Below, piece after piece: positions 12,259 to 62,867 of a stretch of 64,000 bases of DNA. Position 1 is the first letter of the stretch, and the number at the start of each line of letters is the position of its first letter. The DNA lies in assembly GCA_010909165.1 (NCBI GenBank), contig VJWM01000044.1, positions 2,170,001 to 2,234,000 on the forward strand. The letters are read 5' to 3'. Source of the stretch: Anthoceros angustus. Lineage: Eukaryota > Plantae > Anthocerotophyta. Below the pieces are notes generated by a model, which worked only from the letters and a program-made list of their open reading frames with translations, was not told where the DNA came from and made no database searches. Both the position numbers and the translations under genes were made by a program.

Positions 12259-13005
12259 CTAGAAAAACAGGAGGCAGAGGATAACAAAGACCCCGAGCAG
12301 CAAGAAAATCCTTGATAAAAAAGCGTCACTGGTCTGTTCAGGCACTACTTGGGGAGCAGCATGCATATGACTTCCAGACAGGCCTGGAGCAGCCCCCAAG
12401 TGAATACCATGCGCTCCACTGAAACCAGTCCCCTGAAACCCGTGGAGCTGCAAGCCAAATAGAGAGGGGAAGAGCCCAAACCCAGCTGACAAAGTAATGT
12501 TCCCAAAGCGGGCACTGGCTGTAGGTATTGCCGGGCCTGCCATGAAGTTAAAACCATGTGGATGAAAGTCATGCTCAGAGGGCCGGACAGTATCCGGCCT
12601 CTGGCCAGCAGGTCGGTGAGGAATGTTCACCCCAGGGACAGCTTTGGTCCTGGGATCGACAGTACCAACCTTCCCGCGTCCATACAGCGGGATGACCTTC
12701 TCCTCCTCCACACCCGCTTTGCAGACGGGACACTCTTGGAGGATGGAGTGCAAGTGGAGCCAGCGATAAAGACACGGCCAGCAGAAGAGATGGCCGCAGA
12801 GGGTCACCACTGGATCTTGCGCCAGCTCCAGGCAGATGTTGCAATCGAAGCTTCCTCCATCGCCGCTGCTGGAGGCCGCTCCAGCTGATTCTCCTCCCAC
12901 GGGCTCCTTCTCCTCGCGCCCTGCAGAACTGGAGGCCGCCACTGCCCCCGGGAACATGGTGCTCACATCCACATACTTCCTTTCCCCGCTCGGCGAAGGA
13001 TCCAT
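12259..13005 (-). CDS. RMA1: RING-HC E3 ubiquitin ligase, RMA1/RNF5-like, 248 aa
   Basis: FDCNICLELAQDPVVTLCGHLFCWPCLYRW...CPVCKA...VIPLYGRG, IPHRPAGQR, and a C-terminal tail anchor (IFLLLGVFVILCLLFF). Confidence 0.92.
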   Translation of the reverse strand: MDPSPSGERKYVDVSTMFPGAVAASSSAGREEKEPVGGESAGAASSSGDGGSFDCNICLELAQDPVVTLCGHLFCWPCLYRWLHLHSILQECPVCKAGVEEEKVIPLYGRGKVGTVDPRTKAVPGVNIPHRPAGQRPDTVRPSEHDFHPHGFNFMAGPAIPTASARFGNITLSAGFGLFPSLFGLQLHGFQGTGFSGAHGIHLGAAPGLSGSHMHAAPQVVPEQTSDAFLSRIFLLLGVFVILCLLFF

Positions 13006-13902
13006 TACCGGTCAAACCTCTTCGTTTCCCTTCCTTTCCCTGCAACGACTGATCACGCACCTCTGCGGTGTGCAGACTCAGATCCTTCACGGAGCGATCT
13101 GATAGGCTGCCTGTTCTCAATCGTTCTCAATCGCTGATCGCCAATGCTTGCATGTTACCCTGGCCGCCCGCAACAAATGTCCGCTTCTGGAAAGCCCCTT
13201 GCCGCCGATCCAGTCACAAGAAATGCCAGGTCCAGCTCAAGCCGGGCACGCCACAATTACTGCCTCACTCGACCTAACTAGCGTGCCGATCATCCGGAAA
13301 CCACCGCCAGTCCCTCCGATTCAGTTAGCGAATGCCGGCAGCGCCGTCGGCAGCGGGGAGACGCAAGTAATTCCTATGCAGCCCGCTCCGTGCTAGCGAG
13401 TCACCCTGCTTGCCCACGCGCTCAGTCCCGCAACCCTTCCTTGCTCTGCAACACAACAGTCCAACAGCGTCGGTGATCCGCCAAGCTTCAGTCTGACCAC
13501 CTGCATCAAGGGCACCTCCAACCACTGAATTTCCCTTTCCCTATTTCCACAAATATTTCGTAAACTGTGCCAGCAATTTCGTGGTAAGGGACAACCCTCA
13601 CCACTTATATAATAATAGGGTGCCAACGATTCGAGGCGAAGTCCGAAAAGACGCGTGGATGGCCATCTACACTACCTAGGTACGGAAAGCAGGGATATTT
13701 CTAGACTTATTATGGTGATATAAGATCTATGATTTAATATATAATTTAATATTTATTAATAAATTGACCAGTATCGCGAAAGCACTCAACTAGGTTTCCA
13801 ACTAGATCCCCTAACTCCAAGACCAACACTTCACTTGAGTTCATATTATATTTGAAAGTATATATTAAAAATATTAGTTGTGTATGTCTAACATTGTCTC
13901 TA

Positions 13903-15018
13903 AGGACCCCTATGGACCGGCAAATCGCCTGAACTAACACCCGTTCAGTTTCATAGTTCAGTTACACAAACCGTGTACCAACAGACAGTTCAACTCCAAC
14001 TTGGACATTTCACTTTCGAGATTGCATTAAAGTGTTAAACGAACTGTAGATGACAAACCATGATCCCACGAACAGGCCATCGAACTCAATCGGATACAAA
14101 TTACCCCAAGTCATTCGTTTGAGACCAGGGTTCGGTCTTCATTTTTTGGCATTTATTCCATTGTATCCGAGGCCAAATCTCAACTCATTTTTGCTTGCAG
14201 GGTTTTGTGCCCAACATCTCGACAAGTCAGCCAGTTCTCAATTTGTCTAAACATATTGGTGCTGAAGATGGAGAGGCTCATACCTTCAAGACCGATGGAG
14301 CCACTAACTAAGTTGTTGATCATGTTGCTTTTACAAACTTGTATGGTCATATTGCAGATATATATATATATTCGTAAGCTTATGTTTGGCTACCAAAGGC
14401 CATTTGGCTATGTTGTGCTAGGATTTAAACAGAGAAAGATGTCGAATGATGATGATGATGAGGTTCTACGTTCAGGCAAGCATCTCTTCATGTATGTGAA
14501 TCAGTCGCACAACATGGTAGTAGGAAAGTATATCTCCTTGTGCTAAGATTCAGGTTGGTGGGTAAAAAAAAGAAGCAACGCAAGGTTTTGGCGATTTTTG
14601 ATAAGCAAGTATGTAGATTGGGATACTTTAAGATGGAAGAGATTGATGGGAATGAACCTTGCTAGGAGCTCGCAGAGCCCGCATAATGGTAAGAGATTAG
14701 TTCGGTTTGAATTAGTTCGGAGATCGAACTGAACCAGTGCAAAAAACCCAAGGTTCGACAAACTACGAGGTTAAAATGCGTAGTTCTACGGTGTACATGT
14801 TACATTTTGAACACCAGCCCTTTCATCTCGTACAAATTTCTCCTTCGTATGTCAGTGGTGGGCGGGCTCATGGTGGGCGGGCTCCTTATGTCAGCAGACA
14901 GACTGCTGCGTTGGATCCTGTACGGGTATCGGTTCGATTTAGTTCTGTGCTAACGTGGGTTTGAACTGAGTTGAACTAATCAAACGGCCTTTGCGAACTG
15001 CCAATCCGTAGGGGTCCG
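13903..15018. mobile_element. Non-autonomous TIR element (~1.1 kb, PIF/Harbinger-like MITE)
   Basis: ggacccctatggaccggcaaatcgc (13904) is an imperfect inverted repeat of gcgaactgccaatccgtaggggtcc (ending 15017). Flanks are cta/tta. No coding capacity. Confidence 0.5.
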
Positions 15019-15502
15019 TTAACTTACATGGGAATTTCCTCTTTCTAGGTGGAAATCCAACACTAGCACTTATTTCTCACTTCTTTTCCAAGGTCCTACG
15101 AAATTATTCTGCGAGATACCACCAAAGTTAATATGATTCTCACTCCGGCTTCATTTTGCACAAAGTTTATGGAAAAATATAAAATATTATGGTTACAAAT
15201 TCAAAATATATTTATCATTTATATTTTATGATATATCTCTTGAAGAACATATATTTATTGATATTTTGGTAGTTCTCCTTGTCAAACAAGTATCTTTACC
15301 GGGTTCAAATAAAGGAAGGAAGATGATAGTACAAATTGTTGCTCGTAATTTATGCTAAGTGGGTGCGCCGGATTTCAGAGAGTTTCTTTGTGCAAGATCA
15401 CTCTTGTTTATGCTCGACTGAACAAGACGACCCTTGTAAGAATTCGTTCTCACATAGTTAGTAGTAGATACATATAGGTAAAAAGATATAGGTGTCTGTA
15501 TA

Positions 15503-17280
15503 TTACACATGTTTCTGAGATATATACGCAAATTCTCCCGGAGTTGACCAATGACAAGTGCTGTGTTCACCTGGCTTCCCTCCTAAAACTTTGAAAGAAA
15601 TGTGTGTGGACGACCATTGACTTGTATCAGTATGACATACAACTATATTAGTAGCAACAAATCCTGATGGTTTAAAAGGTTGTAATGTAACTTTGAATAA
15701 TTTGGTTTTTGGAATGTAATGACACATTTCCACTCTGTATGGAAATAACAACGCATGACAAATGGCGTATTTGGATTCCACATCATTTAAGAGTTCCACG
15801 CTGGTCACCTTATACTTTTCATCCGTGGGAATCTTGTTGCCTCTTATAAAGGATGAACTACCTAGTGCTGTTAATCCATATTTGCTAGCTGGCATCACAG
15901 AAACAATAAATTCTGCCATTGCTTCCAAAGACGTTATGCATTTTCTAACTTCTCCCAATTGCAATTTTGCATCTCGATTACATATTGAAGGAATCACTCG
16001 CATGTTTTTGGCCATAGGTGAATCATCAAAAATATGTAATTGTTTAATAATGTGAGTTACATTCAACTCCGTGATATTTCCAAATGTGTCAGCAATCACT
16101 CGTGGCAGAAAGGGGATAGAGAGTAAATGTGCCAGCTTTAACGAGAATATTGATTTTGGTGCTGCAATTCTTTTTGAAGCAGTGGTTTGGTTCACAAGAT
16201 CAGTTTCATGAAACCATGATAATTTATCATTTTCTGTCACATGATATTCAGAAATCACATCCCCATAAGTTGTACGAGACCTTTTTTGTTCATCAATTTT
16301 GACCATGTCGTTATAAGCCGATGGGCCATGGTTTTCGTCCTTGATCTTTGATAGGCCATTGTTAAGTGTTTGATCTTGTTTTGTGTTATGCTCTTTTGAT
16401 ATCAACTCCTCGAAGATAAAAACCCTCTCCCCATCACCATCTTTGTATGCTGCCCGTCCTCTTTTTTGCTCATTAATCTGCTGGTTCTTTGATATAAAGT
16501 CACCGTTCTTTGAAATAAAATCATCAAAGTTTAAATCCCTTTGAGGATCATCATCTTTATATGCTGCCCGTCCTCTTTTTTGCTCATTAATCTCCAAACT
16601 ATCATTCTCTTCTGAGATTACATCGCCATAGGCCGATCGAGATCTTTTTTGCTCATTAATCTCCAAACCATCATTTCCTTCTACAAAATATGCCGATCGT
16701 CCCTTCTTCTCTTTATTAATATTAAAGTTTTTATCATTATTGGCTAACGGTTCTTGTTTTTTTTCATTTATTTTTATCAGCGAAGGAATATATGTCAAAA
16801 AGCTTTTATCAATACACAATAGCCTTGCCGATAAACATAACTCAATTGCAATACTTTTATTTGATATTAATTCATCAGTTTGAATGATTCTACTAAACCG
16901 TTTTACATCAAAAGTTGAAAGAGGGGATATGATACGGAACCAACTTTTAGGTGCATATGTGGTAATAAAGGTATTATCCCAAAATTTCAAGACGTCTAGA
17001 TTCTTGCCTTCCACAAGATATGCATCACGTTGAACATTGTGTGGCATGTCCAAAGCTTGTACTTCGCGTCCTTGAGCTCCAATCACACAACACATCTGAA
17101 AGTGAACATGTTATATGATGTCACCAAAAGTGGGTAAGTATTCTATTTTGTTTTAATCACTGAAAAAGAAAGTATATTTGTTGAAAAATGTTGGTTACGT
17201 AGCAATGCATTAATGGAAGTGTGTACTCCGCTACTTACCATAAATATTGGGAAGAGGATGCACCATTTGATACTTGTCAT
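15503..17280 (-). CDS. Secreted BURP-domain protein with tandem K[R/K]xRxxY repeats; exons 17239-17280 and 15503-17095, ~544 aa
   Basis: Exon 1 MTSIKWCILFPIFM|gtaagt splices to ttcag|MCCVIGAQG, giving a signal peptide. A PG1beta-like pro-region follows (FWDN...SPLS...LCLSARLLC), then the repeat region, then a BURP domain starting WFHETDL with CH-x10-CH-x27-CH-x25-CH-x8-Y. Confidence 0.92.
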
Positions 17281-18543
17281 TACTATGAAGTATAAGTAAA
17301 AAAAAAAAGAAAACCAATCTATGAAGTCACTCTTGTTTGTTCAAAGTGAACAAGTATACTAACAAAAAATATGTCAATAACCAACGGTAAATGTTAGCAA
17401 CTCGAAGAAGAACAGATCAATATGCAAGGATTGAAGTTGCATTTGAGGAGAGTTGTGATTAAATAACATGAAAATATCGTTCAACATACTATTGATACTT
17501 TTATATTAAATAATTATCTTTATACTAATCGCGTGGCTGGGCACTACCACTTAGTAGGAATAATAGCACCTAAAGACAACACAAGATCAAACATTCTCAA
17601 CGATTACAAAACTTGTGTCACTACATTAACAAAATACTTCTTCCACGCATAATGTAACACAACACGTAACCTACAAATTTGAGAAGAATAATTGGTGGAC
17701 TGCACAAAGTATCAAACATTCAAGACATATTCTTTTTAGAGAGATCAGAGTAATAAAACTTCTGAATGTTAATGTACATGATATTAATATAATATAATAT
17801 TTTTAGATATTAGAATCAGTTTTAGATATTTTATGGAAAAAATATTTTTTAAACTAAAATAATTATACTTTAATTATATATACTATTAGACCACATAATG
17901 GAATATAAGTTTAATGTGCCTAAGGTGGTAGGTTTTGTAGGTAGCGTGAAAGAAAATGGGTCCGCTATACGTACATACTTGGTCTGGAAGGTCGTAGCAG
18001 TAGGTTGAAGAAAGTGGGTCCGCTATACGTACAGACTTGGTCCGGAAGGTTGTGGGAGTAGGAGGGTTCGAGGCAAGGTGCGAGAGGCAAGAGGCAAACG
18101 CGTCGCGCTGCCCTGACTCTTGCGGGTCTTTCCCCTGCAGGCACGTAAGCTCGCTGCCCGAGAGCCTGGATCTGCCGGGTCACGGCGAGGCGTGGCGACA
18201 GCGTGCAATTCGCAGCGGCCAGCATCGCAATTCGCATCGAGCTGGTGCGGGCGCGGAGCCCATCGGAGAGCCTGTGCCGGCGTGTAGGTCTGGGCAGCTC
18301 GGATGCGGGGCTTGCAGTACCAGCAGCAGCAGCAGCAGTAGCGGTAGGGCAGGATGGGGAGCTGGCGTTGCGCCTAGAGATGGAGCAGGACAGGGCGGCA
18401 TGCAGGCCTGGACAAAGGGCCCGGAGGGCTTGAGCGGGCCACCTGGGAGGCGAGCGGGTTGGGAGGCCGGGGGAGGCAGGGTTGTGGCTGCTGGTGGAGG
18501 AGGAGCAGGAGCAGGAGCAGGAGGAGTTGGTGCTGCTGCCACC

Positions 18544-19829
18544 ATGCCGTCGGCGTCCCCGACCCAGTCGTCTCATGCCTTCATGCAGTTTCTGAATTCG
18601 GTGTTGTCGCAGAGAGGGCCGCAGTCGTTGCCCTACGAGGAGGAGGTGAAGTTGACAATTCGGCAGCATCTTGTGCAGGTGATCCAGGATTTCCCGGGCT
18701 TGCAGGTGAAGACGGCCATGTTCACGCACAATGACGGCCGCAACGTGAATCTGCTGCAAGCGGACGGCACCATTCCCATGTACTACCAGGATGTGAAGTA
18801 CAACATCCCTATCACCATGTGGCTTCTTGAAGCGTATCCCAGGAACCCGCCCTTGGTGTATGTGTCTCCCACCAGGGACATGATCATCAAGCCGCGCCAT
18901 CCGCACGTGGATGCCTCCGGGATGGTGTCGGTGCCGTATCTGAATCAGTGGCTGTACCCGCGCTCCAACCTGGTGGAGCTGGTGCAGAATTTGTCTCTCT
19001 TCTTCGGCCAGGATCCGCCGCTCTACTCCCGGCCCCCGGGGGCCCCTTCCCGCCCTCCTCCCCCGGCCCCGGCCCCCTACCATGGCATGAATCCCATGCT
19101 CGGGGCGGGCCTTATGTAAATTCTTCCTCCTCCTGCCCTCCTCCCTCCCACCCGCCCCTGGGCCACCACGGGAGTGCCTCCCAGATCAGACCCTACCCTC
19201 CCTACACCTCCTCCCTCCAGCAGCAGCAGCAGCAGCAGCATCAACAGCAGCAGCAGCAGCAGCAGGCGGCTCCCCCGCAGGACCCTGGGGAGGTGTTCAA
19301 GAGGAACGCGGTGAGCTCGCTCACGGCCAGGCTGCAGCGGGACGCGGAGGAGCTCATCAAGGAGAGGGAGCGGGAGATGGAAAACCTGTTCAACACGCAG
19401 TCCGTGCTGAACCGCAGGGCGGAGGAGATCGACAAGGGGGTGCGGGAGCTGCAGCAGGAGAAGGAAGGGCTGGAGGCCCAGCTCCAGGTGCTGCTCACCA
19501 ACACGGATGTGCTGGAGTCGTGGCTCAGGCAGAACGACAAGGGGTCGCAGGACATAGACATAGACCATGTGTTCGAGCCTGCCGACGCCCTTTCCAAGCA
19601 GCTGTTGGAGTGCACTGCTGCCGACTTCGCCGTGGAGGACATCTTCTACTCTCTAGACAGGGCTGCCCAGGAGGGTGCCATCCCCGTAGACCAGTACCTG
19701 AAGCATGTCCGGAGCCTGGCTCGTGAGCAATTCTTCCACCGAGCTACTTGTGTCAAGGTGAAGCAAGCGCAGGTATCACAACAAGTTGCGACCATGGCAG
19801 CTCGGGCTAACCCGCACTTTGTCCTGTAG
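18544..19829 (+). CDS. ELC: ELC/TSG101/Vps23 (ESCRT-I) copy 1; a single-base frameshift near 19101-19110 splits it into two ORFs
   Basis: UEV domain ([38 protein letters not shown]...[11 protein letters not shown]), Pro/Gln linker, coiled coil and steadiness box ([11 protein letters not shown]). Adding one base, as present in the paralog at ~54351, restores a 428-aa ORF. Confidence 0.9.
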
Positions 19830-53310: not shown

Positions 53311-53897
53311 TGGTCAGCATAATCTGTACGACAGTGGCTATGTTTTCACATAGTAAAATGTTCTTGGGTCATCCATAAAGTAGTCGCATCGAGTATAGGG
53401 GACCACTCAAAATTCTTGTTTGAATTGCTACTCGGTTATTCCCTTGAGTGCTCCCACCATTTCAGTGGCCAATAGTATAAATTAAACCCTAATGAGCGAA
53501 AGTTAGGAATTTGCTTTATTTCAGCGCCAAATAGAGAACCCTCATTGGCGGAAGTTTAGAATTTTTGCCGTGCAATTTTTCCCAAGTCATCAGATCTCTT
53601 GAAAGGATAATGTGAAGACTTTATAAAAAAGAACGAGATTGGGAAATCCCGGCGAAAGGAACAACCCACGACGGGGCACCAGGCCAGGAGGGGGGCGTGC
53701 CCCCGCACTAATCTACCCTATAACCCCCAATCTCTTGAAAGGAGGTGAGTAACTTATTTTCGTGGGGCGTGTGGATCCTGTCCATCTCGACTATGTGTCC
53801 AGTTGTGAGAAGTTCGGACCGGGATGCGCAAGCTACACGCGGGAGCCCGGCTCCCAAGGGCTGCCTACCGCACTCGCTGCCGTACGAGGAGAAGTCT

Positions 53898-55037
53898 ATG
53901 CTGACAATTCGGCAGCATCTCAAGCAGGCGATCCAGGAATTCCCGGGCTTGCATGAGGAGACGGCCATGTTCATGCACAATGACGGCCGCACCGTGAATC
54001 TGCTGCGAGCGGACGGCACCATTCCCGTGTACTACCAGGATGTGAAGTACAACATCCCTATCACCATATGGCTTCTCGAAGCGTATCCCAGGAACCCGCC
54101 CTTGGTGTCTGTATCGCCTACCAGGGACATGGTCATCCAGCCGCGCCATCCCTGCGTGAATCCCTCCGGGATGGTGTCGGTGCCTTATTTGAGACAGTGG
54201 CTGTACCCGCGCTCCAACCTGGTGGAGCTGGTGCAGAATTTGTCTCTCGCCTTCGGCCGGGATCCGCCGCTCTACTCCCGGCTCCCGGCGGTCCCTTCCT
54301 GCCCTCCTCCCCCGGTCTGGGCTCCCTTCCACGGCAGGAATCCCATGCTCAGGGCCGGGCCCTATGCAAATTCCTCCCAGATAAGACCCTTCCCTCCCCA
54401 CGCCTCCTCCCTCCAGCAGCAGCATCAGCAGCCGCAGCATCGGCAACAGCAGCAGCAGCATCAGCAGCAGAAGCAGGCGGCTCCCCCGCAGGAGCCCGGG
54501 GAGGTGAAGAGGAACGCAGTGAGCTCGATCACAGCCAGGCTGCAGCGGGACTCGGAGGAGCTCATCACGGAGAGGGCGCGGGAGTTGGAGAACCTGTGCA
54601 ACATGCAGTCCGTGCTGAACCGCAGGGCGGAGGAGATCGACACGGGGGTGCGGGAGCTGCAGCAGGAGAAGGAGGGGCTGGAGGCCCACCTCCTGGTGCT
54701 CCTCAGCAACACGGATGTGCAGGAGTCGTGGCTCAAGCAGAACGACAAGGGGTTGGAGGACATAGTCATAGACCAACTGCTGGAGCCCGCCGACGCCCTG
54801 TCCAAGCAGCTGCTGGAGTGCACTGCTGCCGACTTCGCCGTGGAGGACATCTTCTACTCTCTAGACAGGGCCGCCCAGGAGGGTGCTATCCCCGTAGACC
54901 TGTACCTGAAGCAAGTCCGGAGCCTGGCTCGTGAGCAATTCTTCCACCGGGCTTCTTGTGTCAAGGTGAAGCAAGCGCAGGTGTCACAACAAGTTGGAGC
55001 TCTGGCAGCTCGGGCCAACCAACACTTTAGCGTGTAA
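53898..55037 (+). CDS. ELC: ELC/TSG101 copy 2, 5'-truncated chimeric duplicate (379 aa from ATG 53898; alternative in-frame ATG at 53793)
   Basis: Open frame homologous to ELC1 from ~53868 (P-H-SLPYEE) to the stop. It lacks the first ~25 codons of ELC1 and has an in-frame deletion of the [17 protein letters not shown] linker. The 3' flank is homologous to the ELC1 flank up to ~55598. Confidence 0.75.
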   Translation: MLTIRQHLKQAIQEFPGLHEETAMFMHNDGRTVNLLRADGTIPVYYQDVKYNIPITIWLLEAYPRNPPLVSVSPTRDMVIQPRHPCVNPSGMVSVPYLRQWLYPRSNLVELVQNLSLAFGRDPPLYSRLPAVPSCPPPPVWAPFHGRNPMLRAGPYANSSQIRPFPPHASSLQQQHQQPQHRQQQQQHQQQKQAAPPQEPGEVKRNAVSSITARLQRDSEELITERARELENLCNMQSVLNRRAEEIDTGVRELQQEKEGLEAHLLVLLSNTDVQESWLKQNDKGLEDIVIDQLLEPADALSKQLLECTAADFAVEDIFYSLDRAAQEGAIPVDLYLKQVRSLAREQFFHRASCVKVKQAQVSQQVGALAARANQHFSV

Positions 55038-59852: not shown

Positions 59853-62800
59853 TTAGATTAAGACATACGTTTCATGGTTTCCACCAGTAAAAGAACCATA
59901 CAATGACTGAGACCTCTTGAAATTGTGCGGATTAGAAATTCTATACGGCCTGGGTTCTGCTCCCTTTGACTCCTGCTCCATTCCACTGCTGACAGTGTCA
60001 TGTAGTTGAGTGCCATGAAGAGAGCCAAAGACTTGGACACTCAACTTGCTCCGCTTGGAGCCAGATCGATGGAGGTTCTCGGAGAAAAAGCTGAGCAACT
60101 CCTTCCGATTCACATTCTGAAGGGCAGCCACTTCAATCTCTGCCCTATTGAAAAGAAGAGTGCCATGTTCAATTTCCGTGAGGAAAAAAATGCTTTCTTC
60201 CCACAAGTTTTTGTGTTTTTCTAACTTGATATCTGTCAAGGCATCTACATGCTTTTGAAACTCGTCGTCGGTTATGTTCTGCAAGGTACTCTCCATGGAC
60301 TGGAGGAATACCTCTACCCGTTCATCAAGCCCCTGAGGGTCCTTCACAGTTGACTGTATGATGAACTGGATTCCTCGTATCCCGTAGTCATTGCGGGGAA
60401 CCAGAGCAACAACATAACCAAGCTGCTCCACCGATCTCAGCTGGTGAAATACTTCCCTTTTGGCTATCAGATGGAATAAGTCGAGGAGTACATTAATCCG
60501 GGGATCATCTTGACTCACTTGAAGATAAAGCAACAGGGCTGAGTTCTCATCCTGAGGATTGAGACCAGCTGCCGAGTAACAGAAATTACCACCTGCATCC
60601 AGCTTCACAATCCTACGCTCCAGGTGCTGAGAGGAATAGAGTGCACGTGCCTTCACCTTCGATCCTTCTTGCAGCATCATCTCGAACTTCTCTATCAAGT
60701 TCTCTGCATCATGTCCGGGCAAGTTCCCAGCAACGTAGCATTCCAAAAATACTCGAGAAAGGATGCGGGTATACACAGACTCCAAATCCTTCACTTCGAG
60801 TGATGGCAGAACGTCAATATACTCGCGGATATCCCAACGTTTATGCTCTAGAAGCAAATTACTATAGTATAAAACCTGTTGATATGGCTGTTGGAACTTG
60901 AAGTTCAACAGGTCTCGCATCACCTTTTCCTTCACTATGTTGAAGCGATCCTCCTTCACTTCAAAATTCACTACTTTTTCCAAAATCATCTCTGCCAGAA
61001 TAGTCAACTTGTGATTATATCCAGATACATAAATCCTGAATCCAGTCACTGTACTGTGAATGTCATAGCTAAGACCTGCCACCTCTGCATAGTATGCAAA
61101 CTCATTCAAGTAATCCACAAGCAAATTTGTGAAGATACGTGTTAGTATGCTACTCTCAGGAGAGCAGTAAGCCTCGGGACAGGTGAACTCCAGCTGTATG
61201 TGGGCCTTCGGTGTGCGGAAGATGGGATCTGGCTTGTACCACAGCCTTGACATAGATGTCCGCCTTAACAGAGATGGATACTTTGCAGTTGAACTCGCAT
61301 CTATCAGGTCAAAATTACTTGGTATAAATAAGTTGGGAGATGGCAAGTGAAGTCTGGGATCAGATTCTTGACTTGCCCACTGTTGCAATAACTCCTTGTC
61401 AATCCTTTCAATTGAAAACGGAGTTCCATACCAGGGCTCTACACTAGTAGTTTTCCCTTCAAACAATTGAGAATGCCAGAATATACGAACATTTTCAACG
61501 GTTAGAAGGTCGACCAACTCCTTGATACTCGCAGCATCAAATTCTTGAAGCAAGTATGGTCCAGCAAGCCAGTCTTGTGGAGGAAACAGCTGCATGTTAG
61601 CGGCAAGGCCTGTAACATACGACACAGGGGGCCGCTTGTCCTGAAAGTGAAACTTCGTATCCCACACAGCTCGTACCTCCTCAAATTCCCATTCAGATAC
61701 ACCTTCCTTTCGCAAGATGGCCAGGTACTGAAAAGCAAATGCAACGATTTCTGCCATGTGCTCTTGCCCCACATCTGTTAGTTCAATCTGGATCACAACA
61801 AAAGAGAAGAACGCAGTTCTCTCCACTTCACCGGCGCTGAGACTATTAGCCCAGCCAAGATCCTTCAGGAGAGCAAATAAAGAACCTTCACCTTCATGCC
61901 CTATCAGATGTGCAAGATAACGACAAGGCCCTGACTTATACTTCTCGATCTGAGGAGGAATAGGCCAGATCAACTCTAAACTGTGCCCTACTTTCACGGG
62001 AGTAGATTTGACAATGATTTGCAGATGCTCTGGAAGGCAAGGTTGACCTGAGAACGAGAGGGGTTTTATGCCAGAGTTTTTAATGTAGCTGAATTTCTGA
62101 GTCAGAAGCTGCTGCAGTACATCCAAACTCTCTTTCCCGTACACAACCAATCGCATAAGATTCGCAGAATAATTAGCATGATAAAACTTCACCAGCTCCT
62201 CCCGAGTGTCCACTCCTCGTTTCTTAGGCAAAACATCCAGAGTTTCTATATTCCCTGTCCCAAACTTGTGATAAGGGTGGTCCTCGCAGCTCACCGACTT
62301 CCATAACTGATTGATGCGCCATGGATCTGACACCAGGTTCTTGCTGTTCTCTGAGTCGACAGCATTAATCTCCCTCGACACTGCATCTGGAGAGAACAAG
62401 GGGCCAATGAAAAATTGAGCAAACCTGTCAAGCGCTTCATCCAAGTGATCAGCATTGACGTCTAAGTGGAAATTGGTGTACTCTGCACCCGTAAACGCAT
62501 TGGCGTGGCCGCCATGCTCAGCCAGGAACTTTGAGTAACTGTCCTCCACAGGATACTTCTCGCTAGAAAAGAACAGCATGTGCTCCAGAAAGTGAGCCAG
62601 GCCCTCCAGCCCTACCGGATCGCTGAAAGACCCAACGTTTACACTTAACGAAGCTGCTGCCTTGTCTGTCTCTGGATCACTGACCAGCAGCGCCTCCAGC
62701 TCATTCGGGAGCACCACTCTGCGATACTGTCTCGTGTCATTCCGAGCCTTGACGATCACAGTATCACGATCAGCTGCCTTGCTGCCCTCCTGAATGCAGA

Positions 62801-62867
62801 TGGGAAGAGGCTCAGAACCGCTGGTCACCTCTGCCGGCTGTTCTGAACAAGGCTGCGCACGCTCCAT
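59853..62867 (-). CDS. Insulin-degrading enzyme-like M16A metallopeptidase (PXM16-like), intronless, 1004 aa
   Basis: Inverzincin motif GLAHFLEHMLF, EINAVDSE, HPYHKFGTGN, HLIGHEGEGSL and FHQLRSVEQLGY in one uninterrupted ORF. Confidence 0.95.
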   Translation of the reverse strand: MERAQPCSEQPAEVTSGSEPLPICIQEGSKAADRDTVIVKARNDTRQYRRVVLPNELEALLVSDPETDKAAASLSVNVGSFSDPVGLEGLAHFLEHMLFFSSEKYPVEDSYSKFLAEHGGHANAFTGAEYTNFHLDVNADHLDEALDRFAQFFIGPLFSPDAVSREINAVDSENSKNLVSDPWRINQLWKSVSCEDHPYHKFGTGNIETLDVLPKKRGVDTREELVKFYHANYSANLMRLVVYGKESLDVLQQLLTQKFSYIKNSGIKPLSFSGQPCLPEHLQIIVKSTPVKVGHSLELIWPIPPQIEKYKSGPCRYLAHLIGHEGEGSLFALLKDLGWANSLSAGEVERTAFFSFVVIQIELTDVGQEHMAEIVAFAFQYLAILRKEGVSEWEFEEVRAVWDTKFHFQDKRPPVSYVTGLAANMQLFPPQDWLAGPYLLQEFDAASIKELVDLLTVENVRIFWHSQLFEGKTTSVEPWYGTPFSIERIDKELLQQWASQESDPRLHLPSPNLFIPSNFDLIDASSTAKYPSLLRRTSMSRLWYKPDPIFRTPKAHIQLEFTCPEAYCSPESSILTRIFTNLLVDYLNEFAYYAEVAGLSYDIHSTVTGFRIYVSGYNHKLTILAEMILEKVVNFEVKEDRFNIVKEKVMRDLLNFKFQQPYQQVLYYSNLLLEHKRWDIREYIDVLPSLEVKDLESVYTRILSRVFLECYVAGNLPGHDAENLIEKFEMMLQEGSKVKARALYSSQHLERRIVKLDAGGNFCYSAAGLNPQDENSALLLYLQVSQDDPRINVLLDLFHLIAKREVFHQLRSVEQLGYVVALVPRNDYGIRGIQFIIQSTVKDPQGLDERVEVFLQSMESTLQNITDDEFQKHVDALTDIKLEKHKNLWEESIFFLTEIEHGTLLFNRAEIEVAALQNVNRKELLSFFSENLHRSGSKRSKLSVQVFGSLHGTQLHDTVSSGMEQESKGAEPRPYRISNPHNFKRSQSLYGSFTGGNHETYVLI

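Follow-up and report, generated by a model that had tools for sequence, protein, structure and literature searches.

A hornwort BURP-domain protein with Arg-x-x-Tyr repeats as a candidate self-modifying precursor

Gene structure and genomic setting

The window, a 64,000-nucleotide stretch of Anthoceros angustus DNA, carries a two-exon BURP gene on the minus strand, whose joined exons encode 544 residues. The gene model comprises the following parts:

17239 to 17280, minus strand: exon 1, 14 codons with an ATG and a hydrophobic stretch, first part of the predicted signal peptide; GTAAGT donor
17096 to 17238, minus strand: predicted phase-0 GT-AG intron of 143 nt, closed by stops in each of the three frames; TTTCAG acceptor (ends 17096)
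15503 to 17095, minus strand: exon 2, a 530-codon open frame, covered in parts by contigs from DNA run X1

The initial annotation had placed a signal-peptide exon at 17239 to 17280, and the hydrophobic codons, start and donor are indeed present there. Judged from the splice signals, exon 1 would be joined to exon 2. Since hydrophobic residues close exon 1 and open exon 2, a signal peptide is predicted by hydropathy, and the product is likely a BURP precursor carrying it at the N terminus. Exon 2 or parts of it served as the query in homology searches. An in-frame GC-AG intron (17007 to 16744) was excluded, as this stretch codes for the conserved pro-region described below; an open frame across it was expected in just 0.035% of shuffles.

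DNA contigs of X1, which is possibly a sample of the assembly itself, span positions 15915 to 16129, 16577 to 16877, and 17070 to 18472. The last of these bridges the 5' end of the BURP gene and the neighboring ELC gene, so the AT-rich island is no assembly joint. Run X2, guessed to be RNA and representing one sample, gave zero contigs on the BURP gene at an ELC depth of 140 to 160, which hints at low or no BURP-gene expression in that sample.

The BURP gene interrupts a conserved head-to-head pair of RING E3 and ELC (Vps23) genes (window positions 13005 to 18519). In a relative (L005, 14253 to 14850), the same two genes face each other in this way across 596 bp that hold no BURP gene; here the gap is 5.5 kb and contains the BURP gene as well as a small inverted-repeat element. 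Synteny with the relative runs on to an insulinase gene. The BURP gene was either inserted in this lineage or lost from the relative, a comparison of two genomes giving no direction. Its neighbors are genes for a fucosyltransferase, the RING E3, ELC, and, at a distance, the insulinase; no methyltransferase, 2OG oxygenase, or protease tailoring gene was found among the scanned ORFs adjoining it. Because the RING, ELC, and insulinase genes are syntenic in the relative that lacks the BURP gene, the neighborhood is not a cluster.

Several other features were observed in this region. Just downstream of the BURP gene, a 1.1-kb element (13904 to 15017) with 25-nt terminal inverted repeats (80%) and parts that are multicopy in X1 looks like a nonautonomous DNA transposon with no clear target duplication. 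A 58-bp tandem duplication (17950 to 18062) lies between the BURP upstream region and ELC, where the GC content jumps from 26% to 62%. The ELC gene changes frame in a region of C/G runs (19040 to 19120), through either an assembly error or a real break; the orthologue of the relative is one ORF. A second ELC copy (53868 to 55028) is a diverged duplicate, with 66% identity to the ELC of the relative versus 84 to 87% for the first copy. The insulinase is 71% identical to the copy in run SRR33208241, 61 to 62% to those of mosses, 57 to 58% to those of liverworts, and 56 to 57% to those of lycophytes. These values fit a non-seed lineage that is thinly represented among NCBI proteins, probably the hornworts. 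Its gene is intronless both here (59853 to 62867) and in the relative (L005, 8801 to 11836) and syntenic between them, and so is not a young species-specific retrocopy.

BURP domain, pro-region, and relatives

Two folded parts of the protein were delimited, together with the predicted copper site:

15506 to 16216, minus strand: BURP domain, starting at the WF motif and running to the C terminus (Pfam PF03181; 8SY2 by sequence and fold)
15755 to 15760, 15719 to 15724, 15632 to 15637, and 15551 to 15556, minus strand: four Cys-His motifs, predicted dicopper site (motif spacing)
16805 to 16996, minus strand: PG1beta-type pro-region, W...P...SPL...C-x6-C (profile score; folded in the model, pLDDT 78 to 94)

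The C-terminal match to PF03181 had an E value of 4e-38 and a score of 131.5 bits against a cutoff of 27. The spacing of the Cys-His motifs (10/27/25) falls within the family motif CH-x10-CH-x25-27-CH-x25-26-CH (PMC11253845), and the N-terminal FF-like motif is WF, as it is across the clade. An intact BURP domain with four Cys-His motifs, as originally described, is therefore present. The PG1beta-like pro-region was likewise confirmed: it scored 31.8 bits against a profile built from 18 homologues, compared with 4.3 or less in 500 shuffles. This type of pro-region is widespread in BURPs of non-seed plants and is ancestral to many BURPs. A Pfam search of the repeats and the pro-region returned zero matches.

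The sole solved relative, by sequence and by fold (E value of 1e-10), is peanut AhyBURP (8SY2). The structure model superimposed on the AhyBURP fold with a Z score of 14.4 and a root mean square deviation of 3.1 over 159 residues, whereas the next, unrelated structure reached a Z score of 3.1. The pro-region and the BURP domain are folded in the model, and residues 96 to 282 between them are disordered.

An exhaustive BURP-domain search retrieved 663 proteins, the best being 38 to 39% identical, and no orthologue was found among 1.84 billion representatives. A metagenome scan yielded zero relatives of the BURP protein, and in an Atlas search the whole ORF fell into generic BURP clusters and the repeats matched nothing. 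Six of the near relatives that were traced derive from SRR33208241, a single run. In a midpoint-rooted tree of 37 rows chosen from 150 hits, the domain grouped with SRR33208241 proteins and the single Marchantia BURP (98/96), and this bryophyte clade contained zero characterized cyclases. Proteins of the PG1beta type formed a separate clade (100/99), and SkrBURP was also placed apart. Membership in the PG1beta subfamily was excluded on this ground and by the absence of 14-residue FxxY repeats.

Members of the bryophyte clade retain the pro-region, and none has the repeat array found here; in several of them, different Tyr or Trp motifs fill the slot. The motifs seen there in clade paralogues (L001, L004, and L007; P0009 and P0011) are RYLGFY, ERYSY, PYPW, and AIWYYY, and P0034 has Met-rich repeats in the slot. 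One BURP paralogue of the relative (L002, 6131 to 7129) is split into three reading-frame pieces.

Tyrosine repeats

Seven repeat units were located, six of them between the pro-region and the BURP domain:

17018 to 17032, minus strand: unit 0, degenerate QRDAY copy without leader, located upstream of the pro-region; R-x-A-Y-x-V-E-G is common to it and unit 1
16688 to 16720, minus strand: unit 1, Ile anchor, KK, core GRSAY (motif scan)
16628 to 16660, minus strand: unit 2, INEQKR, core SRSAY (motif and DNA repeat)
16559 to 16591, minus strand: unit 3, INEQKR, core GRAAY (motif and DNA repeat)
16445 to 16477, minus strand: unit 4, INEQKR, core GRAAY, youngest duplicate, of unit 3 (DNA repeat)
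16313 to 16345, minus strand: unit 5, core GPSAY with Pro at -3, Ile anchor retained, basic leader lost (motif scan)
16265 to 16297, minus strand: unit 6, IDEQKR, core SRTTY, adjoins the BURP domain and pairs with unit 2 (DNA repeat)

All seven Tyr motifs of the initial annotation were found in place, with QRDAY lying outside the array. The I[N/D]EQKR leader that it assigned to most of them is exact in four of the seven and takes the forms INKEKK and IKDENH in one each; the dibasic flanks hold for five and are missing from two.

Units 1 to 6 have in common the pattern Ile-x6-[R/P]-x-x-Tyr, in which Ile stands at -10 from the invariant Tyr. In all six, the residue at that distance is a lone hydrophobic one amid charged ones. 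The residue at -3 is Arg in five units and Pro in the remaining one, and KR or KK directly precedes the five-residue core in five of the six. Four cores have Ser or Thr at -2 and thus match the x-S/T-x-Y class. The core Tyr is nearly the sole Tyr within the repeat tract, with Tyr-to-Tyr spacings of 20, 23, 38, 44, and 16. The motif [KR][KR]-x-R-x-x-Y was observed five times, whereas 100,000 shuffles averaged 0.011 occurrences and never gave more than 2; as it was picked after sight of the sequence, this excess shows repetition, not function.

Repeats at the DNA level confirmed that the units arose by internal duplication. Units 2 and 6 differ over 17 codons by nine synonymous and three nonsynonymous changes (pS of 0.78 and pN of 0.08; P = 1.7e-4, or about 0.004 when corrected for 24 comparisons). 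Several further pairs point in the same direction but are nonindependent, and the test on units 0 and 1 was not significant (P = 0.13). The repeat Arg is encoded by three different codons. The synonymous excess between units indicates that the repeats are conserved as protein under purifying selection. The constraint reaches into the spacer after Tyr, so the core is not singled out as its target. A stand-alone ST precursor of family PF10950 was rejected as an identity for this protein, which has no PF10950 match or EFEPRPxxxxY and is fused to BURP.

These results bear on whether the gene is a relocated paralogue that is now silent or decaying. Its absence from the syntenic RING-ELC interval of the relative, its long terminal branch in the tree, the lack of an X2 contig, and the fragmented paralogue of the relative would all suit such a history. 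Against it stand a 530-codon frame kept open in DNA of 35% GC, intact splice sites and catalytic residues, and the synonymous excess between repeats. We consider decay or silencing highly improbable and conclude that the BURP gene is real and intact, with selected Tyr repeats.

Repeated N-terminal tracts, nearly all of them Tyr rich, occurred in 48 of 161 BURPs compared (about 30%). The repeat-bearing BURP architecture is thus common, and it is mostly uncharacterized. Arg as the commonest residue at -3 was seen in this protein alone among the 161. In the model moss Ceratodon purpureus, KAG0580295 (P0046) has about 15 near-identical units with K-S-A-Y-x-Y, K-S-A-Y occurring 13 times, and is itself a strong uncharacterized fused candidate.

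Proposed cyclization and comparison with known systems

The fused burpitide cyclase class is defined by a macrocyclic bond that is made by the BURP domain. In the protein described here, the BURP domain probably modifies its own repeats in some way. Our preferred reading, which we put forward tentatively and at somewhat below an even chance, is that the protein is a BURP peptide cyclase fused to a multicore substrate of its own, linking Tyr-O to the Arg or Pro at -3. By analogy with known systems, the precursor would enter the secretory route and bind copper, and each unit would be held via the Ile ten residues before Tyr. An O2-dependent oxidation would then bond the Tyr phenol oxygen to residue -3 (five times Arg, once Pro) at its beta-carbon, remove 2 Da per unit, and close 17-membered rings; GRAAY, SRSAY, and GPSAY are examples of the pentapeptides that would be cyclized. 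Proteases may then cut at the dibasic (KR) site and in the Asx-rich spacer and release small cationic peptides. Residue -2 (Ser, Thr, or Ala) would be the second choice of link site, giving a 14-membered ring. As the conserved residue at -3 is Arg, and once Pro, the simplest prediction is a 17-membered ring of the Tyr-O-Arg or Tyr-O-Pro type.

In known burpitide cyclases, two coppers are held by four histidines, none of which is dispensable, and O2 is used to form the bond between Tyr-O and a beta-carbon (PMC12186524). The cross-link partner is at -3 in FLWGY (PMC12186524), in elaeagnin LPIIY (PMC10349150), and in the second ring of selanine A (YPSY), whereas 14-membered rings have it at -2. 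The proposed ring would follow arabipeptin, elaeagnin, and selanine A in its register. A hydrophobic anchor lies 11 residues before Tyr in ArbA2/CamA and is essential for ArbB2, but is a feature of split systems that is not clearly apparent in validated fused enzymes (PMC12186524). ST repeats have a hydrophobic residue 9 before Tyr.

The cyclase reading gains from the Cys-His spacing and the fold, which are those of the proven cyclase AhyBURP, from the invariant Tyr, from the residue at -3, where the one exception to Arg is Pro, as in elaeagnin, from the anchor and the purifying selection on the repeats, and from the position of the repeats in the slot of the Tyr/Trp motifs of clade relatives. 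Against it count the lack of a burpitide cross-link to Arg in the literature searched, the frequency of x-S/T-x-Y cores that have given no molecule, an anchor otherwise typical of split systems, a clade with no characterized cyclase, constraint that covers the spacer too, and an X2 sample without transcript. AlphaFold2 docking of unit 6, run without a positive control, gave no confident pose (pLDDT below 50), which we do not take as a negative. The earlier proposal of a fused BURP precursor with repeat cores is supported in part, by the layout, the enzyme residues, the selection, the Tyr/-3 register, and the anchor.

The repeats may be functional without being substrates of their own BURP domain, serving as linear KR-cut peptides or as a linker that is charged and disordered; the domain would then act on another substrate in trans. 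The nearest relatives all lack the array, so the normal substrate of the clade may lie elsewhere; the cores are polar, unlike proven substrates, and Tyr-rich repeats are widespread among BURPs with no assigned function (the 48 of 161 noted above). Such a role sits poorly with a strict Tyr at a fixed distance from its anchor, in the slot of BURP substrates. To our knowledge, every such array beside a BURP domain whose role has been worked out has proved to be a substrate. We regard action in trans as rather unlikely.

A PG1beta-like route appears unlikely as well. Here BURP would oxidize the repeats, producing either Tyr links or a dehydro-residue at position -3 or -2, and the whole tract would persist in the cell wall or in storage as a polypeptide that binds pectin through its basic patches, with no small cyclic peptides released. 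The layout of predicted signal, pro-region, repeats, and BURP is that of PG1beta, whose mature form consists of the repeat domain and whose FxxY repeats are 2 Da lighter at the Phe in position -3 (PMC5313189); selection that includes spacer residues agrees with this as well. However, the domain is not in the PG1beta clade, FxxY is absent, the irregular Tyr spacing shows no 14-residue period, and the dibasic sites ahead of the cores favor cutting. The attribution of the PG1beta modification to BURP is also no more than a hypothesis.

Returning to the cyclase reading, its most specific version, in which a BURP of the bryophyte clade makes an ether from Tyr-O to the Arg beta-carbon and hence cationic 17-membered cyclopeptides, is one that we hold to be distinctly unlikely. 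Burpitides of the cyclopeptide alkaloid type contain an ether from Tyr-O to an sp3 carbon, with partners that have so far been aliphatic or aromatic. In the literature searched, outside of which lay most subscription journals, we found neither a burpitide cross-link to Arg nor a hornwort BURP study. From the sequence, it is reasonable to view Arg at the usual cross-linking position as an unusual feature of a candidate self-modifying precursor. The novelty first claimed for the cores was overstated: four of the six fit the published x-S/T-x-Y class, SkrBURP has an Arg core, Ceratodon has K-S-A-Y, and in PG1beta this slot is occupied by the FxxY repeats, which remain part of a wall polypeptide. 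That class is the largest among putative cores and has no isolated molecule (PMC10107690, PMC11250218), which makes a released natural product less likely here and a fused test case more valuable.

With enzyme and candidate substrate in one polypeptide, a single expression experiment addresses both the product of the x-S/T-x-Y class and the cyclases of the bryophyte clade, and the array has a built-in comparison of Arg with Pro at -3 and of Ser, Thr, or Ala at -2. If the cyclase reading is true, copper cyclase chemistry would be widened to charged partners, burpitides would be pushed back to nonvascular plants (the first such in the literature searched), and the orphan x-S/T-x-Y class would gain a fused handle. 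If it is refuted, an ordinary repeat-bearing BURP remains.

Among known systems, SkrBURP of Selaginella kraussiana (QXY82431, P0030), the source of selanines, resembles the protein in its signal (predicted here), Tyr-ended multicore repeats, acidic spacers, C-terminal BURP, Arg-containing core VLFYRSY, and -3 register in one ring; it differs in lacking the pro-region, in its hydrophobic cores and BURP clade, and in its proven chemistry. ArbB2/ArbA2, CamB1/CamA, and ElaBURP share the five-residue core ending in Tyr, the link at -3 (Leu or Pro; proposed here), and a hydrophobic anchor set amid charged residues upstream, but their partner is aliphatic instead of Arg, the Arb and Cam systems are split, and the anchor is at 11 rather than 10. 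The ST/organ-specific proteins (PF10950) have a charged recognition sequence with one hydrophobic residue followed by four residues and Tyr, and orphan x-S/T-x-Y cores comparable to the four of six units here with Ser/Thr at -2. They are stand-alone precursors of core eudicots, and, as the PF10950 match is absent, this is a resemblance and not shown homology. The PG1beta subfamily agrees in pro-region, overall layout, and X-x-x-Tyr register, and differs in having Phe where Arg or Pro stands here, more than 20 units instead of six, regular spacing, and a separate clade. Ceratodon KAG0580295 shares the pro-region, basic-S-A-Y repeats, E-E-Q with acidic spacers, and BURP; it has a second Tyr per unit and belongs to a moss clade, and the repeat similarity is not significant (E value of 0.058). 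Outside plants, the ryptides, described by Caruso in 2019, are reportedly bacterial RiPPs with an Arg-Tyr cross-link, an example of an Arg-Tyr macrocycle made by an unrelated radical SAM enzyme. Set beside these systems, the protein is plausibly a variant within the known fused-BURP kind, distinguished by Arg-x-x-Tyr repeats.
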